Below are positions 40,309-48,154 of a stretch of 64,000 nucleotides of DNA, in pieces. Numbering within the stretch: position 1 is the stretch's first letter; each line of letters starts with the position of its first letter. Location: assembly GCA_946965045.2 (NCBI GenBank), contig OX337230.1:744001-808000 (forward strand). Reading direction: 5' to 3'. The translations under genes and the position numbers were made by a program. This stretch comes from Epithemia pelagica. Taxonomy: Eukaryota > Protista > Bacillariophyta. The notes beneath the pieces were generated by a model. It did no database searches. It was not told the DNA's origin and was given only the letters and a program-made list of their open reading frames with translations.

Positions 40309-40545
40309 ACAGTTTTGGACGACTACTACTACTACTACGACACCACATGATGTGACTTGATACGGCGATTTCTAGACGAGGCACTCGGATGCATTCAAGT
40401 TGTGAGATGTTTTCTTCTCACTCCCTGTACAGCAAAATTTTGCTTTTCCTACTTTCTCCACATGTACACACACATGTCGATTGATATATACACACGCAAA
40501 CGCAAACACACCACTCTTTCTTGACCCATAAACTACATAATTCAG

Positions 40546-41173
40546 GGATACTCGGTATTTTTTGTGGACCACATACAAATCAAGACAAACTACCACAAAC
40601 TACTATGTCGTATAGACTTATTGTGGTATAGCTCTACTTATTAAGACCGTTATAAGACGTTATACTACAATACCCCCAATGCGGAGTTGAGCGATGTGGA
40701 TAAATGTTGTCAATTGTTGATAATTGTTGAGCGTGCCATGTTCCTAAATAGACAAATAGAAAATTCTAAGTAGAATTGTTTTTCTGTTGCTCCCCCAAAG
40801 CCCCCCCAAAATTAGTCCCGAATGCATCGCATGCAGTCACAGTTGACTGCATAGCACATGGCACGAAATTTCTTCGCCATGTGCAACATGATGAGTTTGA
40901 CGTGATGAATGATTATGCGTTCTTTTCTCGATTGTCGTGCATCGTGCAAGTTGACCATGGCCGACGGTACGGTGGAAATGGCGGTTCAGACTGGTTGTTT
41001 CGACAGCCTTGTCTGGACGAATCCACAAATCCACAAATCCACAAATCCACAAATCCACAAATCCACAAATCCACAAATCCACAAATCCACAAATCCACAA
41101 ATCCACAAACGACGCAACAACACAAACGACGCAACAATCAAACATCTTATCTCTGCTACTATGGGTTAATGTT
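40546..41173. repeat. Left TIR (~628 bp) containing (ATCCACAA)x11 at 41021-41108
   Basis: Reverse complement of 45498-46118. Confidence 0.95.
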
Positions 41174-41243
41174 GACTAAGGTAAGTAAATGAGCCGAAAG
41201 GGCGAGGACTGTCATGATTCTTGGTTGTTGCGGTCTTTCACGC

Positions 41244-41723
41244 TCACATGGTTTGTCCCCCCACAGGGTCAGCACGTACTGCAGTCGGTGCAGCAGCCGC
41301 ATTGGACTGATTCTCGACGGGTTCGAATACAACCCACTTCCAATCTGCTTCAGGACCAAGGGTATTCTGGGTCAGGATTGCGTCGTGGAGATACAGCTGG
41401 AAGATCTGGGTCATCCTGGATGAATCGGTCACCCCACACATCGCAATTTTCTTACAAAGCTTGCGGAGAAGTGCCTCGACGTCCTTTTGCTGGTCGAGGA
41501 TGGCATCTTCGAGGTTGTTGGGGGGCTCTTCGTTGTCGGGGATCTCCTTCACGTTCACTTTGCGGACCCTCGTCCACTTTTTCCGCCCATTTTCCTTCTC
41601 GATAGCAACGTACGCCATCTTTGCAGTATCCTGCTTGCTGGCATTCCTCTAGCCCTTCATGCCAACGTAAGTGCCTCCTGTGAAGGCAATGCGGCAGCCA
41701 ATCTCAAATTCTTCGTCCGCCAT
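41244..41723 (-). pseudogene. Transposon ORF-A, ~159 aa, KOW-like N-terminus, one premature TAG (41649-41651)
   Basis: MADEEFEIGCRIAFTGGTYVGMKG*RNASKQDTAKMAYVAIE... continues in frame into ORF 41244-41618. The G-x-Y-x-G-x-x-G pattern resembles KOW. Confidence 0.55.
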
Positions 41724-41876
41724 GGTGCGTGGTATCCAACAATCAAAGAGAATGGGAAAATTGTGACCACTCGTGTTCGCGTTTACAAAAACGAGTTCGT
41801 TTACTTGTTATCGCTAAAATAAAGTAGTCAGAACACAGGCTTCATCTACTTGTACATTTCTTATAGTTATTCAAAG

Positions 41877-42776
41877 ATGCTTATAACGCCTCACAAAATG
41901 ATGATGCAAGGATTGAACTTCCTTGGCATCCATCCTCCTCCTTGTGCACGAGAGAGCACGAAGTACAGCGACCTTTTCCATAAGCATTATGGTTCGTCTA
42001 CTTTAGTTGTTGCTTCTCTATGGTTTGACCTTGCACATGCGTCGGTCAATGGCGAATGCTTGCTATTAGAGAAGGAGATGACAACGAGTGGCCTACGGCA
42101 ATTCCTTATGGCTGTCTACTTTCTTTGGGTCTATCCCAAGAATGCCGAACTTCTTGCCTCGGTATTCAATGTATGCGTGTCCTACTGCCAAGGTAAGAGG
42201 CTGTGGCGTTGGATTGAGAAGATACAGGCGATGAAGACGATTAAAATCACCTGGCCAGATTTCTCGGAAATTTTTTGCCTTACTGTGGATGGAGTGGACT
42301 TCAAAACGTGGGAGCCCAAGCATCCCATCCATCACCGTGACAAGGGGGCCTATTCCCCAAAGTTCAATCATGGCGGTGTGAAGTATGAACTGGGTGTTGC
42401 TGTGTTTCAACCAAAAATTGTATGGACAAATGGCCCCTTCAAAGCTGCTGTACATGACTTAACGGTATTTCGTGCAGGGCTCAAGCAGAAGATTGGTCCA
42501 GGAAAAAAGGTAATTGCTGACCGTGGATACCGCTCAGACGACAAGCACGAGCAGTTAATGCTTTCCCTACCGTATCACGGAGACAGTGCCGAGCTCAAGA
42601 GCTTCAAGAGCCGTGCGCGCTGTTGCCATGAAAGTGTCAACGGACGGATTAAAAACTTCCGAGCGATGGAAGACACCTTTCGTCATGGCAAAGAGAAACA
42701 CAAAATCGCCTTCGAGGCTGTATGCGTCATTGTGCAATACCAAATGGATAATGGCGCTGAGGTTTTCCAAGTCTAG
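41877..42776 (+). CDS. Transposon ORF-B: DDE transposase (IS5/Harbinger/ISL2EU-like, DDE_Tnp_4)
   Basis: TVDGVDF...EP, VKYELGV, WTNGPF...HDLTVFR, VIADRGY and RCCHESVNGRIKNF; catalytic D-D-E intact, ORF open. Confidence 0.9.
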   Translation: MLITPHKMMMQGLNFLGIHPPPCARESTKYSDLFHKHYGSSTLVVASLWFDLAHASVNGECLLLEKEMTTSGLRQFLMAVYFLWVYPKNAELLASVFNVCVSYCQGKRLWRWIEKIQAMKTIKITWPDFSEIFCLTVDGVDFKTWEPKHPIHHRDKGAYSPKFNHGGVKYELGVAVFQPKIVWTNGPFKAAVHDLTVFRAGLKQKIGPGKKVIADRGYRSDDKHEQLMLSLPYHGDSAELKSFKSRARCCHESVNGRIKNFRAMEDTFRHGKEKHKIAFEAVCVIVQYQMDNGAEVFQV

Positions 42777-42983
42777 GAGAAGGAGTAGGTGCTCTACAAG
42801 ATTAATAGTTCTAATACAATAGTGAAACCTTAACGACAAACTACTACCTGATTACTCACTACCAATATTCATATGCATGTTTATGCTGTGTCCAGTGGCC
42901 AAGAAACAATTGCCTCTGAGTCGCTGTCGACAACACAAAGAAGTTTTTCATGTGATGTACTCTACTGGTACTCGTACCAAGAC

Positions 42984-44513
42984 TCAAACCTTTTTCTTCC
43001 GAGTAGTCTTACCATTGCCCTGAGGAGAAAACAAATCCTTGACTCCCTGTTTGCGTTGCTTGTTCTTCGCACGCCTCGACGATCCCTTGACGACGATGCG
43101 CCAAAAGACAATCATCCCAAGCATACCATTTGGGAGATCCTCGTCTTCGTCTTCATTGTCTGCTTGTGACTCCAACTCCACAATGCTTGCAGTCGTAGAA
43201 TCGGACTCCGCCATCGTTGCTGCTGCCTCACCTCGAGCAACACTGGCAGCATGATCACCAGTTGGGCCACCCTCCAATTGCACTTCGTCGTCGTCCTCCT
43301 CCTCATGATTAATTGTAAGAGGGATCATCTCTGTTGGCACTTCATATTCCTCACCAGCAAGAACGGAGTTGTCCAGAACTATTTTCGACGGGAAAACAAG
43401 AATCCAGTAAGCCATCTCGCGCTCTTTGCTGCCCTTGACAGCGAAGTATGTCTTGTTGTGCTCCTGGATAAACGCCTTACATCGAGGACCCATTCTGGGG
43501 TGAGAATGGTATCGTCGCACATTCCTCAACCAGAAGTCCCTGGAAACTCCCTTGACCAACACCTTGGGGCCAGGGATATGCGTGTACTCTTCGGGCTTGG
43601 GGATCTGTGCTTCCCAAGTGGTGTAGTCCGAGCTACCTGGCGAAATCGATCGGTGAATGTAAACGCTGTCCCAGGTGTGCTCGTTGTAAACCATGTCGGT
43701 CACATAGAAGACCTCAAACTCCCTGTTCCTCTCGGGGTGATCCAGATCCACATAGATGACGAATGGATTGTCCTTGGTTCCCTCAAGAACTCGGGAAGAA
43801 GAATTGGTTACCTCGAGGGACGAAAAGCTTGAAGTCAAGTCAGGAACACTCATCTTCTTGTTATCAACAATCAACCGTGTCCTCCTGGATGAATCAACAA
43901 TCTTCGAAGGGGGGGCTGTTTCCAATGGAACAGAATGTGTTGGAGTCGGGGTTGAGCGGCGCGCCTCAGCAAACGCAACAACTTTCTTGGTCGGTTGCTT
44001 CGAGAGAGCACAAGTAGGAGGGATTATGGCGTCGGTGATGGCGTTGAGGCCAAAGCCTTCTGCGCTGTCAACAGTGTACTCCTCGTCGGAGTCGGGTGGG
44101 GTGCAGTCGCTTGCGTCTTCCCCGTTGGGTTCCTTCTTCTCTGGCTTGGTCTCGGGTTCCTTCTTCTCTGGCTTGGTCTCGGGTTCCTTCTTCTCTTGCT
44201 CGGTCGCTGACTTCTGCAACTCGCCAAGTTCTTGGTAGGTCTTATCAGAAGGTTGGACCTTCAGTTCCTTGAGGCGAGAAGCGTACTGGTCAATAGGAAG
44301 CTTCTTGAAGTAGCTCCACTTGGTCTGAAATGCTCTGCGGAGCAACGAACCACTTTCCCCGTATGTATTGGGGTACCTGTCGCAGATCGAGACAAAACGG
44401 AGGCTCTGTCGACTCTTGTTGAGCTTGTCAACGTCTCTTAAAAGCTCAAGAGTCTGAAGACCCGACAGGTGAATCCTTACTTCGTTGTTTGCTTTGGAGT
44501 TTTTTTTGGACAT
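42984..44513 (-). CDS. Transposon ORF-C, ~509 aa, unknown function; helical N-domain, 27-bp tandem repeat (EKKEPETKP), globular C-domain
   Basis: Long open ORF between the TIRs, convergent with the transposase. Candidate for the DNA-binding partner protein of Harbinger-type elements (inference). Confidence 0.7.
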   Translation of the reverse strand: MSKKNSKANNEVRIHLSGLQTLELLRDVDKLNKSRQSLRFVSICDRYPNTYGESGSLLRRAFQTKWSYFKKLPIDQYASRLKELKVQPSDKTYQELGELQKSATEQEKKEPETKPEKKEPETKPEKKEPNGEDASDCTPPDSDEEYTVDSAEGFGLNAITDAIIPPTCALSKQPTKKVVAFAEARRSTPTPTHSVPLETAPPSKIVDSSRRTRLIVDNKKMSVPDLTSSFSSLEVTNSSSRVLEGTKDNPFVIYVDLDHPERNREFEVFYVTDMVYNEHTWDSVYIHRSISPGSSDYTTWEAQIPKPEEYTHIPGPKVLVKGVSRDFWLRNVRRYHSHPRMGPRCKAFIQEHNKTYFAVKGSKEREMAYWILVFPSKIVLDNSVLAGEEYEVPTEMIPLTINHEEEDDDEVQLEGGPTGDHAASVARGEAAATMAESDSTTASIVELESQADNEDEDEDLPNGMLGMIVFWRIVVKGSSRRAKNKQRKQGVKDLFSPQGNGKTTRKKKV

Positions 44514-44885
44514 TGTGAGATTTTGTCTGTTGCATGCGAGTTTCCAAGGAGAGAGTCGAGCAAGACAATGCATCTTATTTGGATAACCACTCCTGTATAG
44601 AATATGTTACTAGTTTGATTTCTTTTGCTATGTAAATGGGTTATGCTGGCGGATATTGATGGCATTAGGTGCTGTCTGGCGACAGCAATGCTGTGACTCG
44701 TGACCAGGTCGTGATTGTTGTGTTCGGAAACGAAAAGAATGTGAAGCCGAGTCGAGTTCTCCTTTCTTGTTGTGTTTTCTTTCTTGAGCCCCTTCTGGGC
44801 TCAACAAAGTCGCAAGCATTGGGACGTGCGACCAGCACTGAGAGAACAGTGCAGCAAGTACCGTGTTTGATTGTTGCTTTTAACC

Positions 44886-45470
44886 ATGGCCCAATCATCC
44901 AAAGACGGGTGGATCGATTGGAGAAACTCCGAAAGTCGATCCATCTTGTTGCTGGACTTGGAAAGCGGCGTTCTTCCACTTGATATCACAGCCCAGGAAG
45001 CTTGGGAGATCTACGCCTTGGAACCTGTGTTTATTGTTGAGGGTGTGGTCTTTGACCAATTCAAGGCCCGACTCGCAGGCCACCGGAAACAGGTGCGACG
45101 CGACCATGCTCAGCGTCAGCGCAAAGAAGCGGCTCTCGTCCACGACCGTCAGTTGTATCCGCGTGCCTTCGTCAACCATCGTGCGGAACCAGTCTTTGAC
45201 ATGTCCGAAGCAAAGACTTTTTTGGAACAAGATGTCGAATATGGGAAGCCGCAGACGATGACAATGTCGGCGCTGTACCATTCGCGGCAGGCCTACCTCA
45301 AGTTTTGACCAGACATCTTTCGACAACGCGTCTATCAAGAACAGCGTCGCCAGAAGTTTCTCGTGTACCTGGAGCAGAAACGAGTTCTCAAGGAAGAAGC
45401 TGCAGAGAAAAGGAGAAAGAAGGTCAGAGAAAAAGCGAGAAAGACAAAAGAGAAAAGTGAAACAACTTAA
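44886..45470 (+). pseudogene. Transposon ORF-D, ~194 aa, internally duplicated domain, one premature TGA (45306-45308)
   Basis: WRNSESRSILLLDLESG...F..RL..HR and FDMSEAKTFLEQDVEYG...F*PDIFRQRVYQE look like two related halves; the frame continues past the stop to TAA 45470. Confidence 0.55.
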
Positions 45471-45497
45471 CGTCCTGACTGGCCGATGACTCCGTAG

Positions 45498-46118
45498 AAC
45501 ATTAACCCATAGTAGCAGTTGTTTGATTGTTGCGTCGTTTGTGTTGTTGCGTTGTTTGTGGATTTGTGGATTTGTGGATTTGTGGATTTGTGGATTTGTG
45601 GATTTGTGGATTTGTGGATTTGTGGATTTGTGGATTTGTGGATTCGTCCAGACAAGGCTGTCGAAACAACCAGTCTGAACCGCCATTTCCACCGTACCGT
45701 CGGCCATGGTCAACTTGCACGATGCACGACGATCGAGAAAAGAACACATAATCATTCATCACGTCAAACTCATCATGTTGCACATGGCGAAGAAATTTCG
45801 TGCCATGTGCTATGCAGTCAACTGTGACTGCATGCGATGCATTCGGGACTAATTTTGGGGGGGCTTTGGGGGAGCAACAGAAAAACAATTCTACTTAGAA
45901 TTTTCTATTTGTCTATTTAGGAACATGGCACGCTCAACAATTATCAACAATTGACAACATTTATCCACATCGCTCAACTCCGCATTGGGGGTATTGTAGT
46001 ATAACGTCTTATAACGGTCTTAATAAGTAGAGCTAGACAACAAAAAGTCTAGACGACATCGTAGTTTGTGGAAGTTTGTCTATATTTGTATGTGGTCCAC
46101 AAAAAATACCGAGTATCC
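45498..46118. repeat. Right TIR (~621 bp) containing (TTGTGGAT)x11 at 45556-45643
   Basis: Reverse complement of the left TIR. Confidence 0.95.
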
Positions 46119-46273
46119 CAGGTAAATGAACTAGAGTAGATCCATATGATGATGACTATGGAGTTTGGATAGAAAATCAGAGTTTGGAAGGTAGCTTGTT
46201 CCTGTACGCACACGGATGGAATGTTGGTGATTCTGTAGAGAAAGATCAAACTATCTAGCTGGAAAGGCGGCCG

Positions 46274-47560
46274 TTACGAACTTGGTTCCACCGGCACGGC
46301 CTCTACTTCTGCTTCCGTCGACTGCGTATCCACCGGTACTTGTTTCTTGGTGGCCGTCCACATGCCGTATTCCATCAACCCACGCTTAAAGGCTCGGTGC
46401 ATACGTTCGAGGCAATAGGCATCGCGAACGCACTTGATGTAGGTTTTGGGCTTGAAGATCCATCCACGAGGATCGTAAATACCAACCAAAATGGAATGCC
46501 TCCAACTGGCAATCGTCTCGTCGACCCAATTGGCTGTTGTAACAGCGTTCATGACTCCGGTCCCTTCAATCAACTCTTTAAACTTGCTCACCGAAATAAA
46601 ATAGGGATGACTCCATTCTTCGTACAAATACTGCAAGTCGCGCTTGTCTCGTTTGTCAAAAGGCATTTCATCCGTCTCGTCACGTTGCGACCAGCAGGCC
46701 ATGACAAAGGTACCACCCGGTTTGAGGACTCGCATCATTTCTTCAATGTAACGCTTCTTGTCTGGCATGTGTTCTCCCGATTCACAGGCCCAGACAACAT
46801 CAAACGAATTGTCTTCAAATTCCATGTTCAGGGCATCCATTACCATAAACTTGGTGCGATCCGCAACGCCCTGTTCTTGGGCCAACTCCGTCCCTCGTGC
46901 CACTTGATTGGGCGACAAGGTGATGCCTGTCACATGGGACTGAGGACCCAAGTTCTTGGCCAAATAGCGACTGGTGCCACCAAATCCACATCCAACGTCC
47001 AACACCTTCATGGAAGATTTATCCGTGGGTTTGGCAATGCCTCCGAATTTCATCATTTCATCGATAAAGTCATATTTTGCTTGGATAAAGTTCTTTTTGG
47101 GAATCCCGGCCTTCATCATGTCGTCTGGCTTATAGTACCCCAAATGAATGTGCTCTCCCCAGTAATATTCCAAAATACCCTCGTCCGTCCATTCATCGTA
47201 TTCTTCCGCAACCGTATTCTCATTGGCTGTAACATTGCTGTAGGTTCCTCGAGGCTTGTCCAACACCAGTTTCACGACGGCAGTAGCAGCGACAGCCACG
47301 GCCGACGTGACCAAGCCCACTGTGCGAAGGGTAGGGTTGAGAGACATGGAGAGCTCCGACCGAGAAGTTCCTGTCGTTCGGCCATGCGTCGCCACTTGCT
47401 GGTTCACATGCTTTGTGGGTGTCGTTGGGTCTGCGACTCGCAAAGGAGGGGACGACAAAAAGGGTGCAGCATGGGTGTGGGCGACGCGTACAGGCGCAAA
47501 ACCACTCGCCACGCCGAACAAGTATCCCACCAACAACGGAAGTAATCTCCTTGATATCAT
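46274..47560 (-). CDS. SAM-dependent methyltransferase, cyanobacterial-type MPBQ/MSBQ / tocopherol methyltransferase family, plastid-targeted
   Basis: YDEWTDEGILEYYWGEHIHLGYY, VLDVGCGFGG, VTGITLS and ESGEHMPDK...RVLKPGG; signal peptide ending ASG-FAP. Confidence 0.85.
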   Translation of the reverse strand: MISRRLLPLLVGYLFGVASGFAPVRVAHTHAAPFLSSPPLRVADPTTPTKHVNQQVATHGRTTGTSRSELSMSLNPTLRTVGLVTSAVAVAATAVVKLVLDKPRGTYSNVTANENTVAEEYDEWTDEGILEYYWGEHIHLGYYKPDDMMKAGIPKKNFIQAKYDFIDEMMKFGGIAKPTDKSSMKVLDVGCGFGGTSRYLAKNLGPQSHVTGITLSPNQVARGTELAQEQGVADRTKFMVMDALNMEFEDNSFDVVWACESGEHMPDKKRYIEEMMRVLKPGGTFVMACWSQRDETDEMPFDKRDKRDLQYLYEEWSHPYFISVSKFKELIEGTGVMNAVTTANWVDETIASWRHSILVGIYDPRGWIFKPKTYIKCVRDAYCLERMHRAFKRGLMEYGMWTATKKQVPVDTQSTEAEVEAVPVEPSS

Positions 47561-48154
47561 TGTCCTTTGCACAGTTGTGATACAATTCAAATGGGATACA
47601 AATCAATCGCCACGACGATTGGTACGAACAACGGAGCAGGAAAGTTGAGTTGGCATCAAAAGACAACAAACTCCATCCACCATGGTGCACAGTGACGTGT
47701 TGGTACTCCTGCGACCTTCGCGCGACTCAAGGGTATCTCAAAAAATTCCCGACGACCATGACAATCACAACCGACCTCCCACCTCCTCCTTGTCAACATT
47801 CTTTCGAATTGGTTGCCTCACTTCCTCTAAGACATGCAGTGGCCAGGGATACAGCGACCATGTGCTTCAGTCTACGAGCAAGAAATCCGAAAAAGTAAAG
47901 GATAGACAACCAAAAGATCATAGTCTGTAGTCTCTAGAGTTCAAACAAAGGGGTTGCTTTAGTTGGTTGAAAATCGACATCCGTGGTCAGTGGCGAAACG
48001 GGAAACCCGTTCATGAACTATCACCAATGACAGAAGCTCCTGAGAAGAAGATGAATCGAAAGTTCTCTCTTCTCTTCTTTTCATTATGCTGACTGACCAT
48101 GAAGACAAGCCTACCAAGCTCAATACTCCAATTAGAACGCAGTCTTCGTTTCCA

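Follow-up and report, generated by a model that had tools for sequence, protein, structure and literature searches.

A four-gene PHIS/Harbinger-type transposon with a CAG target duplication in the genome of the diatom Epithemia pelagica

As a rule, eukaryotic cut-and-paste transposons need a single protein, and Harbingers need two. In canonical Harbingers the second is a DNA-binding, Myb-like protein, which binds at subterminal sites and guides the transposase to the ends of the element and into the nucleus; reportedly, such a second DNA-binding protein is required in Harbinger elements (Sinzelle et al., 2008; Hancock et al., 2010). The element described here was found to occupy 5,573 bp (positions 40546-46118) of a 64,000-nucleotide stretch of the genome of the diatom Epithemia pelagica (contig 3, positions 744001-808000; hereafter the window) and is classed as a variant within the PHIS superfamily. 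It is read, with a probability of roughly 85%, as a slightly decayed copy of a cut-and-paste PHIS/Harbinger transposon, from a lineage which duplicates CWG targets and in which a DDE transposase of ~300 amino acids (aa), encoded by gene T, is always accompanied by three intronless genes, here termed A, C and D.

Among the described PHIS groups, NuwaI is defined by a 5'-CWG-3' target duplication and possesses two open reading frames (ORFs), for a transposase and a Myb/SANT protein, with terminal inverted repeats (TIRs) of 12-61 bp starting GGG, and has been described from 16 animal genomes only (Han et al., 2015, Mob DNA 6:12, PMC4482050). The Thalassiosira family Harbinger4_TP has a 3-bp duplication and represents a lineage sister to PHISTA, near or inside Nuwa in the tree of Kojima (2025, PMC12730594); a link between this family and the present element could not be made. 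Extra genes have been reported in the same study, with PHISTA (Puccinia) carrying TET/JBP and HarbingerS (Phytophthora) carrying a SET methyltransferase. The Harbingers of Ectocarpus, a stramenopile, are two-gene elements only, with ANT or TNA duplications (PMC12477816). A literature search, with Repbase outside it, found no paper describing the set of A, C, D and T or a four-gene diatom Harbinger.

Termini, transposase and copies of the element

The ends of the element were read directly from the sequence. The left junction reads attCAG followed by GGATACTCGG, with CAG at 40543-40545 and the element starting at 40546, and the right junction reads CCGAGTATCC followed by CAGgta, with the element ending at 46118 and CAG at 46119-46121. 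A repeat finder identified a gapless inverted pair of 603 nt with 98% complementarity (40545-41147 vs 45517-46119) and a second, perfect one of 21 nt (41153-41173 vs 45498-45518); the TIR arms are therefore 628 bp (left) and 621 bp (right) in length. Within each arm there are 11 perfect tandem units of 8 bp, AATCCACA, with the core TCCACAA, and an extra, inverted TCCACAA is found 17 bp from each tip (the left one at 40562-40568). This heptamer occurs 48 times in the window, compared with an expected 15.3. The four genes are arranged as two divergent pairs and, judging from this layout, the A/T and C/D spacers probably act as bidirectional promoters. The features are as follows.

40543-40545, no strand: left target-site duplication CAG, recurring at 46119-46121
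40546-41173, plus: left TIR, 628 bp, tip GGATACTCGG (inverted-repeat pairs)
41020-41109, plus: left subterminal array, 11 x 8-bp AATCCACA, candidate protein-binding sites (repeat finder, motif count)
41244-41723, minus: gene A, 159 codons, broken by TAG at codon 25 (sister copies, family alignment)
41724-41876, no strand: A/T spacer, presumed bidirectional promoter (gene layout)
41877-42776, plus: gene T, 299-aa DDE_Tnp_4 transposase, intact (Pfam, alignment)
42984-44573, minus: gene C, 529 aa, intact (ORF list, sister copies, model)
44574-44885, no strand: C/D spacer, presumed bidirectional promoter (gene layout)
44886-45470, plus: gene D, 194 codons, broken by TGA at codon 141 (sister copies, model, homologues)
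45498-46118, minus: right TIR, 621 bp (inverted-repeat pairs)
45555-45644, minus: right subterminal array, 11 perfect 8-bp units (repeat finder)
46119-46121, no strand: right target-site duplication CAG, matching 40543-40545

Gene T is a single, intronless ORF whose product, counted from the first ATG, matches DDE_Tnp_4 (PF13359) with an E-value of 1.1e-9 and 38.6 bits (cut-off 24.8). With the triad columns assigned via the known DGxD, (A)DxGY and RxxxE motifs, D138, D215 and E252 were found to be invariant across 23 aligned sequences. A word search retrieved 208 homologues of ~300 aa, and PF13359 is present in most of them.

A preliminary description of this DNA, made from its letters alone, had given the same boundaries, TIRs of ~625 bp, the CAG duplication, a 299-aa transposase and two divergent gene pairs, all of which were confirmed in the sequence. 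Its assignment of the element to a PHIS/Harbinger type is likewise borne out by the DDE_Tnp_4 match, the invariant D/D/E triad, the TIRs and the 3-bp duplication. As regards its ORFs, T and C stood as seen, while its A (41244-41618, minus strand, 124 aa) and D (44871-45308, plus strand, 145 aa) proved, by comparison with sister copies, to be truncated versions of genes of 159 and 194 aa, respectively.

The assembly (60.5 Mb in 23 contigs) contains more than ten genes for silicon transporters (best E 1e-226), which marks its host as a diatom. A TIR search of this genome yielded four full-length copies with ~98% identity, located in the window and on contigs 9, 17 and 5, together with three shorter relatives bearing the tips and arrays of the window family. 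The tip GGATACTCGG is common to all of these, and the terminal 8-bp arrays of the sister copies are longer, with many more units than the 11 of the window. The element is young, and the differences among the four full copies are mostly private to the window copy. In that copy T and C are intact, gene A has a TGG to TAG change at codon 25 (41649-41651) and gene D a CGA to TGA change at codon 141 (45306-45308), for which reason it is probably not autonomous. The full genes are found in the sister copies (A of 159 aa, D of 194 aa), and the copy on contig 9 looks complete for all four. The conserved part of C is open in all four copies, that on contig 17 having a frameshift near the C-terminal end.

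Smaller differences between the copies were also observed. An A-run near the start of C (window 44499-44500) differs by +1 in the contig-9 copy and by -2 in the contig-5 copy, which shifts the upstream frame, so that the unconserved leader at the N terminus varies from copy to copy and the conserved body remains in frame. A 27-bp coding repeat in C (window 44127-44205), encoding (KKEPETKPE)n, has three units in the window and two in the contig-17 copy. In the contig-5 copy the C-D spacer is split, at the equivalent of window position ~44705, by an insertion of 8,382 bp (L021:4727-10000, continuing in L027) with TGTTAC...TAACA ends, which is probably a long terminal repeat retrotransposon that landed in the transposon. 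Non-autonomous relatives of 2.7 kb share the same tips and TCCACAA arrays and have unrelated inner sequence; one on contig 1 (L025:1608-1964) contains an ORF whose end resembles a dimerisation domain of the hAT family (...SSERAFSIAG...).

Identical 3-bp flanks were found at 15 of the 16 insertions examined in this genome, where each insertion would match by chance with a probability of 1 in 64. Thirteen of the 15 matching pairs are CAG or CTG, with one CGG and one CCG in addition. The CWG duplication to which the preliminary description had pointed, as in NuwaI, held (definition of Han et al., 2015, PMC4482050). Within the window family the full copies are flanked by CAG/CAG (window), CAG/CAG, CGG/CGG and, on contig 5, CTG/CAG, and the three short relatives by CAG, CTG and CTG. 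The flanks in other families of the genome are CAG, CTG, CTG, CCG, CAG, CTG, CTG, CTG and CTG, and among metagenome elements one has CTG/CTG and one CTG/CCG. The tips across the families of the genome are GGATAC, GAACAC or GGACAC. In several families with the gene order of the window the TIRs are long (500-740 bp) and contain a short tandem array peculiar to the family; the cores of these arrays are GGACAA, AGACAA or CCACAA, and the array of every long-repeat family has an NNACAA core. Families with a second gene order (see below) have TIRs of 23-28 bp, whose tips, taken together with the G of the duplication, read GGGACAC.

Distribution, order and constraint of the four genes

Six-frame searches of the genome gave 131 matches for T, 39 for A, 59 for C and 50 for D (42 and 45 non-redundant places for C and D, respectively). 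Each of the 38 full-length T matches is accompanied by A, C and D within 13 kb, a strict co-occurrence which extends down to 35% T identity (35-57% outside the window family). In the other direction, 38 of the 39 A matches and, among the non-redundant places, 41 of 42 for C and 41 of 45 for D have a T match no more than 13 kb away, the exceptions being one decayed A+C remnant and a few D fragments. When gene orders were mapped at 13 divergent loci of the genome, two were found, namely A- T+ C- D+, which is that of the window, and A+ C- T+ D-, which forms a 100/100 clade on the transposase tree. Most families possess intact, intronless ORFs for all four genes.

The set was also found outside this genome. 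In a metagenome scan which returned 80 loci, with profiles of A, C, D and T run on the contigs, the longer contigs from other organisms carry the full set in further orders (A+ C- D- T+ in L054, C+ A- T+ D- in L066, D+ A- T+ C- in L067/L068 and T+ C- A- D+ in L052). The gene set is thus conserved and its order is not, as is predicted by selection on the set and not by a one-off capture. The recurrence of A, C and D in other copies, proposed as a check in the preliminary description, was seen in 4/4 copies, in every divergent family of the genome and in metagenome contigs of other organisms. That description had also suggested a check by the ratio of nonsynonymous to synonymous substitution (dN/dS), which was informative in part. 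Between families the synonymous sites (dS) are saturated while the proteins can still be aligned, so that dN/dS is mostly uninformative and serves as a qualitative sign of constraint only; in the single pair close enough to measure (T in L032/L038), omega is 0.096.

A word search with D returned 139 homologues; the sole named one comes from the diatom Cylindrotheca closterium and is uncharacterised, and JGI matches are labelled hypothetical. Both observations fit the earlier suggestion that diatom 'hypothetical' proteins may be genes of transposable elements. The corresponding search with the C alignment gave two hits among 8,000 candidates scored; it was swamped by low-complexity words and its result therefore says nothing on the rarity of C.

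Two related families showed other arrangements. In one element of a sister family, on contig 16 (L040:270-9547), the T-C-(D) block is duplicated in tandem inside the element: two identical T genes, separated by 3.6 kb, are enclosed by one pair of ~570-bp TIRs, with CTG flanks. A second, more abundant PHIS family was observed on contig 2 (L124:1780-4923) and at ~90 similar places; it is ~3.1 kb in length with a 30-bp TIR and CTG/CTG flanks, and its transposase matches only residues 130-299 of T (~34% identity), with no detectable A or C. A weak alignment to the first D module (hhalign E 0.032) and a C-like ORF (hhalign E 0.4) in this family are not claimed as homologues.

Relation to described groups and other explanations

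The element resembles NuwaI in its PIF/Harbinger-type DDE transposase, its 3-bp CWG duplication, the presence of more than one element-encoded protein and its G-rich tips (GGG in NuwaI, and here the G of the duplication followed by GGA, GGAC or GAAC). However, it carries four conserved ORFs with no Myb/SANT Pfam match, whereas in NuwaI there are two ORFs, one of them for a partner protein which Pfam recognises as Myb/SANT. Its TIRs of ~625 bp contain internal 8-bp arrays and begin with GGATAC after CAG (with 23-28 bp in sister families), compared with 12-61 bp in NuwaI, and its host is a diatom, whereas NuwaI is known from animals only. Compared with the published description, the element follows NuwaI in its target rule but departs from the architecture given for that group.

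It is accordingly unlikely that the element is a plain NuwaI member of PHIS whose extra ORFs are annotation noise. The duplication which defines NuwaI, and the position of Harbinger4_TP near or inside Nuwa, would favour such membership, but the ORF number, the Pfam result, the TIR length and the host listed above do not agree with the NuwaI description, and the extra ORFs are conserved and under constraint and so are not noise.

With canonical PIF/Harbinger elements (Ping/Pong, Harbinger3_DR) the element shares the Pfam transposase family and a 3-bp duplication, and the part of their partner protein could be filled by the predicted three-helix modules of D and of the N-terminal domain of C. 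It differs from them in having CNG duplications in all matching pairs and four genes, in contrast to TWA/TNA (ANT in Pangu) and two genes, and in its short (299 aa), intronless transposase. PHISTA and HarbingerS are similar in being PHIS lineages which stably carry extra genes, PHISTA also being without a Myb/SANT protein. Their extra genes, however, are recognisable chromatin- or DNA-modifying enzymes, whereas no enzymatic domain can be recognised in A, C or D, and PHISTA has TA duplications where CWG is found here.

A second alternative is that A, C and D are fragments of host genes captured in the manner of Pack-type elements, with no part in transposition, the set reflecting recent amplification of one chimeric master. 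The four copies of the window family are ~98% identical and on their own cannot separate capture from function, and the short relatives do carry foreign fragments, for example the hAT-dimerisation-like ORF. However, A, C and D accompany transposases of only 35-57% identity, in two orders in this genome and in further orders in contigs of other organisms; their ORFs are open although synonymous sites are saturated, and there is almost no match to A, C or D outside such elements. Capture is largely refuted by the orders within the genome, the metagenome contigs and the co-occurrence, and is considered very improbable. Least probable of all, to the point of being negligible, is the joining of two independent units of two genes each (A+T and C+D), by fusion or nesting, within a single pair of ends, an arrangement which the two divergent pairs with separate spacers might suggest but which is at odds with the single TIR pair and single duplication, with the breaking up of the pairs in other orders (A+ C- T+ D-; D+ A- T+ C- in L067) while the set stays complete, and with the failure of the genome search to find a C+D unit with its own ends.

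Predicted products of A, C and D and their possible roles

The preferred reading, that of a CWG-duplicating PHIS lineage with a conserved set of four genes, leaves three products to be accounted for. In the family alignment, A has an N-terminal G-x-I-x-F-x-GGTY-x-G-xx-GW motif followed by a helical tail. The preliminary description had called it KOW-like, and this stood as a resemblance of pattern: hhalign placed GGTYxGxxGW in register with the KOW motifs of the rpl24 and RPL27-like ORFs of this genome, weakly (E 0.26 and 0.5). No Pfam match to KOW (PF00467) was obtained in nine members at E up to 10, and, as these hhalign values lack significance, a KOW assignment for A is regarded as unproven. 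More generally, A, C and D, searched against Pfam singly and across family members, gave no credible match, including none to Myb/SANT, HSP20 or CS; profile searches against the sequences of solved structures gave none either, and the ESM Atlas held no usable match for A or for the C-terminal domain of C.

The model of D, built on 84 sequences, is confident (pLDDT, the predicted local distance difference test, of 95.9) and suggests two similar tandem three-helix modules (~16-90 and 108-193), each with three short helices whose last part is predicted to be a long basic helix. This bears out the duplicated domain which had been noticed in D from the sequence. In a structural search FF domains were the best match (Z-score 6.3, root-mean-square deviation (rmsd) 2.3, 66 residues), followed by HD-ZIP and other homeodomains (Z 4.5-5.6), the Chd1 DNA-binding domain (Z 5.3) and Myb/GARP (Z 4.5). 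For C, the model has three parts and suggests a helical domain (31-127, confident), a disordered acidic and lysine-rich linker (130-260) and an HSP20/CS-like beta-sandwich (beta-rich, 261-425 and 484-495). Approximately 30 of the 50 top VIA-align rows for the latter are alpha-crystallin/HSP20 or CS proteins (p23, Shq1, Sgt1, NudC; Z 4.1-6.7, several with high rmsd), and the N-terminal domain gave weak helix-turn-helix or Myb-type rows (Z 4-4.9). Foldseek against the PDB gave no match at E <= 0.001 for D or C, homeodomains appearing for D only at E >1.

On these models and by analogy with canonical Harbingers, a possible mechanism may be outlined. The transposase would cut at the GGATAC... tips and insert at CWG with a 3-bp stagger. 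D, with its two predicted three-helix modules and long basic helices, may be the counterpart of the Myb-like partner; either D or the N-terminal domain of C would bind the TCCACAA arrays in the long TIRs and recruit the transposase both to the ends of the element and into the nucleus. C could serve as a scaffold with a helix-turn-helix-like head, a flexible linker and the HSP20/CS-like beta-sandwich, and A as a small accessory factor. For its own movement the window copy would depend on proteins made by intact sister copies, of which that on contig 9 is an example. As a tentative extension, less probable than the preferred reading, the diatom CWG lineage may form a new PHIS group with a four-protein machine, comprising a minimal DDE transposase, a tandem three-helix end-binder D, a scaffold C with a DNA-binding head and a co-chaperone-type HSP20/CS-like domain, and a small KOW/SH3-like A; the A, C and D families would then make up a sizeable share of the 'hypothetical' proteins of diatoms in genomes and marine metatranscriptomes.

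Several points weigh against this reading of the element and its products. The window copy is itself defective, and the flanks of the contig-5 copy (CTG/CAG) and of one metagenome element (CTG/CCG) indicate that the duplication is not perfect everywhere. In the distant relatives L105/L106, only T and D were detected with the profiles used. The roles of A, C and D in DNA binding, targeting or anti-silencing are inferred, and A, C and D are without a match in Pfam, in the solved-structure sequences or in the ESM Atlas. All fold matches are weak, with Z <8, a range common to unrelated small folds; the model of C was built on 17 sequences only, with a mean pLDDT of 63.7, and D could just as well bind protein, in the manner of an FF module, as DNA. 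Furthermore, diatom Harbingers such as Harbinger4_TP have entries in Repbase, and the gene set may already be on record there.

The retention of four genes through deep divergence and repeated reshuffling of their order implies a more elaborate machinery for transposition or host interaction than is known for the superfamily, and CWG-targeting, NuwaI-like behaviour is extended from animals to diatoms. Three uncharacterised protein families gain a context, which matters for the annotation of 'hypothetical' genes in diatom genomes and ocean metatranscriptomes. The element is young, all four genes look intact in at least one sister copy, and a system that targets CWG might come to serve as a genetic tool in diatoms.

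To the right of the element, an ORF encoding a methyltransferase-like protein of 438 aa is found on the minus strand (window 46274-47590), with its end 153 bp from the target duplication; the insertion lies just downstream of the stop codon of this ORF.

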